Assembly (NCBI GenBank): GCA_020536535.1
Contig: JAHLWZ010000836.1
Span: 25,513-89,512, forward strand
DNA from: Pelomyxa schiedti
Lineage: Eukaryota > Protista > Evosea
Direction of reading: 5' to 3'
DNA length: 64,000 nt
Shown here piece by piece: positions 1,624 through 2,178 of this stretch (position 1 is its first letter; the number at the start of each line of letters is the position of its first letter). The position numbers and the translations under genes are program-made. The notes beneath the pieces are model-generated. The model was not told the origin of the DNA. It worked only from the letters and a program-made list of their open reading frames with translations, and ran no database searches.

Positions 1624-1801
1624 TATGTTTGTATTCAAAAATCTCTAAAATTAGCTATTTTTTTATGTTTTTTTATGTCCATGCACCAGTGCCAACGAAG
1701 TGAGAACAGACCAGAACTGATCGAAAACCGTCTCACAAAAAATTTCTTTGAGCCGGTGGTCGCGCTACAGTGCATCAATGTTTTTTGAGGAGACTTCGAA
1801 G

Positions 1802-1990
1802 AAAATTGTTGTGCCGGTCCCTCGAGGCGCCCCGCCCCCGGGATACCCAGGAAACGGAGCACCAATTTCGAGGTAAAGTTAACAGCTTTATGCAATAACC
1901 ATTATGCGATACCCCCTGGGGTTTCGGGGGCAGCAGGAATCGAACCTGCAACATGAATTTGAGGGTGGACGACACAAGCAGCACCGTAGC
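1802..1990 (-). ncRNA. Putative ~190-nt structured Pol III precursor containing the permuted tRNA
   Basis: Leader TTGTGTCG (1977-1970) pairs with trailer CGGCACAA (1816-1809). A GC-rich hairpin at 1873-1820 abuts the anticodon arm. TTTT at 1805-1802 follows the closing helix. An A-rich tract lies upstream at about 1993-2008. Confidence 0.55.
1874..1954 (-). tRNA. Circularly permuted tRNA-Asn(GTT): 3' half (nt 44-73) at 1954-1925, 8-nt spacer at 1924-1917, 5' half (nt 1-43) at 1916-1874
   Basis: Minus strand reads ATGTT GCAGG TTCGATT CCTGC TGCCCCC G / AAACCCCA / GGGGGTA TC GCAT AATGGTTA TTGC A TAAAG CT GTT AA CTTTA. The halves give a 7-bp acceptor stem, perfect T and anticodon stems, G18G19, U8-A14, A15-U48, G46 and G73, totalling exactly 73 nt. 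Confidence 0.8.
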
Positions 1991-2178
1991 TTGTTTTTAT
2001 TTTTATTGTAGCATCGGCAAAATTGACCCGGCAAACAGGCATCATCAACAAATTTTTTTTTGGTGAGTGCGCATTGTGGGAGGATCTTGAAAAGCGGTTG
2101 GAAAGTTCGATCCATTTCTCCTTGAACTTTGCTTTCGCCAAACGAGTTTGATTTTAAAAAAAAAAACAAAGTCGGAAG

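Follow-up and report, generated by a model that had tools for sequence, protein, structure and literature searches.

A permuted tRNA-Asn cloverleaf in Pelomyxa schiedti forms the core of a conserved folded RNA recovered as two processed pieces

Introduction

The known circularly permuted tRNA genes are broken at positions 15/16, 20/21, 37/38, 50/51 or 59/60 and carry a BHB motif at the junction, and in the permuted tRNAs of algae circularisation precedes the processing of the acceptor end (PMC3978253). On the minus strand of a 64,000-nucleotide stretch of the Pelomyxa schiedti genome (hereafter the window), a permuted tRNA-Asn(GTT) gene broken at 43/44 had been predicted from sequence, in what was taken to be an amoeba-like host; Pelomyxa schiedti is indeed an anaerobic amoeba. 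Finding a permuted cloverleaf in a genome does not suffice to prove a tRNA gene. The question raised by this locus is whether its two halves are joined into an ordinary tRNA-Asn or whether they belong to an RNA of another kind.

Materials and Methods

The genome searched was the Pelomyxa schiedti assembly, with 52,367,397 bases in 5337 contigs (52.4 Mb and 5337 scaffolds in PMC8887013). The RNA data are assembled contigs from two single-cell RNA runs (2023) of one sample, probably the libraries of PMC10579272, judging from the year, label and study code; the libraries of that study were tailed in vitro with poly(A) polymerase (PMC10579272). Data of this type capture a modified or charged 76-nt tRNA poorly, and contigs lose rare forms.

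Results

Permuted halves and joined cloverleaf

The swapped halves lie on the minus strand exactly where they had been predicted, with the 3' half ahead of the 5' half (Table 1) and, once joined, they are called by ARAGORN as a 73-nt tRNA-Asn(GTT). In the native order of the window, ARAGORN makes no call. A scan for permuted cloverleaves finds this one site in the 64 kb window and none in 200 Markov-shuffled windows. The acceptor stem of 7 bp with one U-G pair, the Levitt pair A15:U48 and the discriminator G73 are all present as claimed; the G46 that was also claimed occurs in the window locus, but is not conserved, being A in the paralogs. Similarly, the extent originally given (1874-1954) encloses both halves correctly, but the real unit is larger, running from 2081 to 1737 when the promoter-like element and the T run are included.

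Table 1. Features of the locus, in minus-strand order (positions in the window).
Feature	Position	Strand	Evidence and remarks
Upstream promoter-like (DUSE-like) element TCCCACAA	2074..2081	-	63 nt above RNA start; invariant in the three paralog types
Whole RNA, 267 nt, closed by terminal helix	1752..2018	-	fold z, consensus fold, RNA contigs
5' scaffold strand (leader)	1955..2018	-	terminal-helix strand, A-rich linker, long-stem strand; kept on the processed piece
tRNA 3' half, 30 nt	1925..1954	-	positions 44-48, T arm, acceptor 3' strand, discriminator G73 at 1925
Spacer closing the acceptor stem, 8 nt	1917..1924	-	uncovered by RNA contigs; 25% identity across paralogs
tRNA 5' half, 43 nt	1874..1916	-	acceptor 5' strand, D arm, anticodon arm; GTT at 1883-1881
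Trailer scaffold hairpin, 17 bp	1826..1863	-	16-17 of 17 pairs kept per paralog, several via compensatory change
3' scaffold strand, pairing with the 5' strand and ending in the terminal helix	1752..1825	-	paired parts 84-92% identical
T6 run, Pol III terminator-like	1737..1742	-	sequence; a T run follows the unit in every paralog

Fold of the whole RNA

The permuted cloverleaf lies at the centre of a larger RNA, about 270 bases long, which is conserved and folded. The single 267-nt sequence has a fold z of -3.88 and, in the consensus fold, the leader and trailer flanks pair into a terminal helix and a long stem, to which the trailer adds its 17-bp hairpin. Because these flanks pair into a scaffold around the halves, the scaffold sits at the position of the tRNA variable loop. 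Between the two pieces in which the RNA is found (see below), 38 base pairs are predicted. As a separate observation, pairing is possible in all three paralog types between the D loop GGUUA (1900-1896) and UAACU (1881-1877) on the 3' side of the anticodon loop, at an energy within 0.7-2.9 kcal/mol of that of the cloverleaf fold.

Paralogs and conservation

The genome holds five copies of three types, with the anticodons GTT, AGT and TGT: the window copy and one on contig C636 (GTT, with identity extending over 3.2 kb), two copies in inverted arrangement on C1130 (AGT) and a single copy on C859 (TGT). All three types give a 73-nt cloverleaf once joined. The similarity spans 2018 to 1752, and a protein-coding cause can be discarded, given that no open reading frame accounts for the conserved unit. 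Across the three types, identity reaches 83% in the long leader stem (83-88% over the paired parts of the leader) and 84% and 92% in two trailer segments; it is 67% and 77% in the tRNA halves, 25% both in the spacer and in the linker adjoining position 44, and 14-25% outside the unit (14% beyond the T run). The paired flanks (83-92%) are more conserved than the tRNA halves (67-77%).

Compensatory changes across the two halves (in acceptor pairs 5-7, in T-stem pair 51-63 and from Levitt A15:U48 to G15:C48) indicate that the tRNA-like fold is under selection, and uphold the cross-half compatibility noticed in the original prediction. Several base pairs of the scaffold also covary among the paralogs, a pattern which, coming from three sequence types only, is suggestive and has little statistical power. 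The discriminator tracks the anticodon (G73 with GTT, A73 with AGT and TGT), and the anticodon-loop bases C32, U33, U36, A37 and A38 are invariant in the paralogs. The fact that all three anticodons are “legal” was set aside as weak evidence, since about 12 of the 16 NNU triplets are legal.

Two processed RNA pieces

The RNA contigs found between 1500 and 2300 comprise two pieces and nothing else. Piece A (2018-1925, 94 nt) is present in both runs and, in one of them, G73 (1925) is followed by a non-templated U-C and a run of A; its contig carries two mismatches. Piece B starts at 1916 or 1915 (G1 ±1), where it is fused directly to the template-switch adaptor, and reaches 1751, a 3' end that may reflect priming on the A-rich stretch 1749-1743. 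The piece from the C859 paralog starts exactly at its own G1. The spacer (1924-1917) has no covering RNA contig in either run, and the joined 43/44 junction is absent from the RNA contigs, which drop rare forms. Both pieces keep their flanks, and their contigs run without interruption through 1954 and 1874, the points at which branching would be expected from an abundant spliced form.

As these libraries were probably tailed with poly(A) in vitro, the run of A shows where the native 3' end lies, which has the form G73-U-C(-A). Such an end is what RNase P, RNase Z and a CCA-adding enzyme are expected to produce, with the first added base unexpectedly U (the tail reads U-C-A against C-C-A). Transcription, cutting at G1 and N73 and a CCA-like tail, in support of the original prediction, are all seen in the contigs of this one sample (ends at 1916/1915 and at 1925, plus U-C-A). 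Template-switch strand invasion at the G run was considered as an artefact and does not explain the gap: C residues are more numerous in the contigs than in the genome, the C859 start coincides with G1 and piece A ends independently at N73. Likewise, genomic oligo-dT priming on the AAA of the spacer cannot give two extra pyrimidines.

Promoter and terminator

The U1 snRNA gene of the same genome carries ACCCATAA at the same -63, whereas the element of Table 1 lies within 150 nt of only 3 of the 74 ARAGORN tRNA calls, those three being themselves atypical RNAs. In Dictyostelium, small RNA genes of both Pol II and Pol III have the DUSE some 60 nt upstream (PMC7919456). The window element matches this DUSE and is an upstream element of the snRNA type; the 267-nt RNA is probably transcribed by Pol III.

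Genome-wide, TCCCAYAA plus a short motif is found 285 times, against 19 for the reversed control (an excess of about 15-fold), so that the DUSE-like element is widespread in Pelomyxa, outside the Dictyostelia. The U1 snRNA gene itself (L038:2649-2811) scores 62.3 bits, and its 5' end reads AUACGUACCUG instead of the usual AUACUUACCUG.

Junction and ordinary tRNA genes

At 43/44, neither a BHB nor a relaxed BHB was found (3/4, 0/4 and 1/4 pairs of the central helix in the three types), and no shifted break sites giving a tRNA-sized product are shared. Conventional tRNA-Asn genes, whose existence had been left to be checked, are present: ordinary tRNA-Asn(GTT) has at least six matches in the genome, one of them verified as a full gene. 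Ordinary Thr genes (AGT, TGT and CGT) are present as well, so that the permuted locus fills no decoding gap. The central part of the original prediction is not supported by these results: its 43/44 splice junction has no BHB and no joined contig, and the flanks are retained; as for an ordinary tRNA-Asn as the product, the flanks are more conserved than the tRNA, the anticodon varies and conventional genes exist.

Discussion

The product of this locus looks like an undescribed eukaryotic tRNA mimic more than an ordinary tRNA, and we consider it probable that it is a tRNA-mimic RNA in two pieces, which RNase P and RNase Z cut and which is CCA-tailed but not re-ligated, rather than a throwaway precursor of an ordinary tRNA. 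A 267-nt non-coding RNA, presumably made by Pol III, starts at 2018 under the snRNA-type element, and its 5' and 3' flanks fold into a long scaffold, enclosing a full permuted cloverleaf and occupying its variable-loop position. In the one sample it exists as two pieces, cut before G1 and after N73, with the spacer gone; RNase P and RNase Z would do the cutting and a CCA-adding enzyme would tail the upstream piece, with the two pieces staying paired (through some 38 bp) and 43/44 unligated. More tentatively, the conserved terminal helix may be a protein-binding module, with TEP1 (no other TROVE protein was found) as the first candidate, and the role of the tRNA domain may be that of an effector or decoy towards proteins that handle tRNAs, on the model of bacterial YrlA. 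What counts against a mimic is that the cloverleaf in the core is complete and of standard length, with a canonical anticodon loop and with GUU and G73 as Asn determinants, which exceeds what a mimic needs; also on this side are the U-C-A tail (not C-C-A), the origin of the RNA contigs in one sample and the small number of paralog types (three).

A true circularly permuted tRNA-Asn gene, although unlikely, keeps an appreciable chance, since the joined length is exactly 73 nt, the loop is canonical and GTT goes together with G73. The two-piece RNA would then be an intermediate, whose ligation gives a 76-nt tRNA, and the scaffold would present the 43/44 ends to the splicing endonuclease, or to another nuclease, without a BHB. 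The constancy of the joined length in all three paralog types, the compensatory changes in acceptor stem, T stem and Levitt pair, the processing at G1 and N73 and the two genes with a tRNA-splicing endonuclease catalytic domain in the genome all agree with such a gene. However, it would have to do without a BHB at 43/44 and with a poorly conserved linker (25%) beside position 44; no junction contig was recovered, though the 94-nt piece was captured; the acceptor-cut pieces keep their flanks, whereas algae circularise before acceptor processing; and the gene is not required for decoding. Were it nevertheless real, it would add a new lineage to those with permuted tRNAs, with a junction not reported so far and independent of a BHB. 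It is quite improbable, in turn, that the unligated pieces work as a functional two-piece tRNA, aminoacylated (with Asn here and Thr in the paralogs) and serving the ribosome or acting as an amino-acid donor or sensor, with a domain of about 190 nt replacing the variable loop. The mature-type acceptor end, the discriminator that changes with the anticodon, the invariant C32 U33 U36 A37 A38 and the precedent of the unligated two-piece tmRNA would suit this role, but there is a single discriminator change only, the ordinary Thr tRNAs of the genome have U73 and not A73, the D loop/anticodon loop pairing competes at similar energy, the tail is U-C-A and charging is hypothetical. A broader proposal, which we regard as improbable, is a family of never-ligated two-piece RNAs in which a complete, chargeable tRNA, with anticodon and discriminator switched between Asn and Thr, is joined through its variable loop to a large protein-binding scaffold, maybe for docking aminoacylated tRNA domains on TEP1/vaults or for entry into the ribosome like a eukaryotic two-piece tmRNA.

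The alternative named in the original prediction itself, eroded remnants of tandem tRNA-Asn genes (or, more generally, decayed tandem tRNA genes or a functionless tRNA-derived repeat), is largely refuted and very improbable. Related loci in which a whole tRNA stands between a preceding 3' half and a following 5' half would be in keeping with decay, but not the conserved promoter, terminator and paired scaffold, the compensatory changes, the precise processing, the low copy number (five) or the permuted homolog in an unrelated wastewater study.

Compared with the permuted tRNA genes of Cyanidioschyzon, prasinophytes, the Bigelowiella nucleomorph and Thermofilum, the locus has the same order, with the 3' half first and a short spacer (8 nt, against 1-74 in the known genes; PMC3978253), and also an upstream promoter, a T run and a spacer removal of the RNase P/Z type. 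It differs from them in its break at 43/44, in having no BHB, in being redundant with ordinary genes and in the long conserved paired flanks that its RNA keeps, with no ligated or circular form seen among the contigs.

A likeness in arrangement is found in bacterial YrlA (PMC4201824; bioRxiv 10.1101/312249), which has the same order of T arm, acceptor stem-loop and D arm within a terminal stem. In M. smegmatis, RNase P cuts the YrlA, which receives a CCA and remains in two fragments (PMC4201824); like the window RNA, it has a covarying Levitt pair, a 7-bp acceptor stem and two unligated pieces. Unlike YrlA (about 110-150 nt), the window RNA is eukaryotic and 267 nt long and keeps a full anticodon arm; YrlA is without the anticodon loop, which is replaced by its scaffold, whereas the scaffold of the window RNA joins at the variable loop. 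The YrlA 5' motif GNCGAAN0-1G is matched only in part (GCCGAUG in the window RNA, GCCGGUG in one paralog), and the Rfam YrlA model RF02553 scores 18.6 bits against a cut-off of 69. The two-piece tmRNA also has a permuted gene, a removed intervening segment, unligated pieces and a CCA-type end on the upstream piece; the window RNA differs from it in having an anticodon arm and G3-C70 instead of the alanine G3-U70, and in its nuclear eukaryotic gene, and ARAGORN makes no tmRNA call. The window RNA is not a member of the YrlA or tmRNA family. Rfam gives only sub-threshold tRNA, YrlA and tmRNA-arm matches.

Regarding proteins, no Ro60 was found by an exon-wise search, which may miss a divergent gene: the sole TROVE locus has TEP1 architecture. 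Animal Y RNAs, for their part, are described as having no tRNA module (PMC4201824; bioRxiv 10.1101/312249). The genome carries genes for TEP1 and for the major vault protein (MVP). In trypanosomes, TEP1 is the sole TROVE protein and the vault RNA was identified by its bulged terminal helix (PMC9326685). The window RNA resembles vault RNA in being a small RNA of the Pol III type, and perhaps also in the interrupted terminal helix that closes it, but is longer than any reported (84-190 nt), is cut in two, has a full tRNA domain and has box B preceding box A, in reversed order; the Rfam vault model RF00006 gives no match at the locus. Conservation of the window RNA is highest in its interrupted terminal helix, and a module GCNNRUGC ... 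CCACNNGC is shared with tRNA-core RNAs that are unrelated to it but have the same upstream element (by strict pattern in 3 of 8 families, with a shuffled mean of 0.12). From this conservation, the recurring module and the trypanosome precedent, TEP1 seems a reasonable guess as a candidate protein partner. As side observations, the TEP1-type gene (L098, G000:C807:25500-35000) encodes TROVE, DUF5920, DUF4062, NTPase, APAF1 helical and WD40 domains and an RGG-rich N terminus, and vault repeats occur on six contigs.

Cut, unligated permuted tRNA mimics have been described in bacteria (M. smegmatis YrlA and two-piece tmRNA), and our literature search returned no report of such a two-piece permuted tRNA-mimic RNA from a eukaryotic nucleus. 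The window RNA, moreover, keeps an anticodon arm, absent from YrlA and tmRNA; it suggests a way in which tandem tRNA genes, once under an snRNA-type promoter, can give rise to RNAs of the Y or vault type, and offers a concrete candidate TEP1 ligand in an amoebozoan.

Related RNAs in and beyond the genome

Wastewater runs of a separate study hold relatives on short contigs: one has the same permuted order, with a different T stem, a 5-nt spacer and G73, and others have the same anticodon arm and a shorter trailer still ending in the ACCACCGG motif. Pattern scans of JGI metagenomes, IMG/VR and GTDB genomes returned no homologs; seven anticodon-arm pattern matches in those databases, having no T or D arms, were dismissed as chance. 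A further wastewater contig (run X6, depth 3.9) is identical to the window over 1759-1909, except for a 3-nt deletion removing the anticodon (1881-1883), which could stem from an error, from skipping during reverse transcription or from a variant.

Within the genome, four loci on C1375, C1831 and C791 (L083, L087, L036 and L037) are driven by the upstream element and have, within a terminal stem, a whole tRNA with a 3' half before it and a 5' half after it. As the intervening sequence is here itself a tRNA, these loci point to tandem tRNA arrays, which are the likely origin of the permuted RNAs. A 151-nt RNA on C792 (L075, G000:C792, about 215,230-215,390, minus strand) has the same upstream element, a permuted tRNA core broken after the anticodon arm and a terminal module in common with the window RNA; its loop TT-TCA-CC holds a UGA-reading triplet on an imperfect stem. 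Further tRNA-core RNAs with terminal stems occur on C590 (L070, L071), C861 (L078), C571 (L035), C919 (L038) and C876 (L079); the C590 RNA is broken in the anticodon arm, the C876 core is unpermuted and tRNA-Pro-like, and the C861 RNA scores 32.4 bits on the YrlA model. Finally, ARAGORN calls a tRNA-Val(GAC) and several tRNA-Arg(GCG) (L017:2257-2328, L001:1282-1356), in which G34 is unusual for eukaryotic four-codon boxes.
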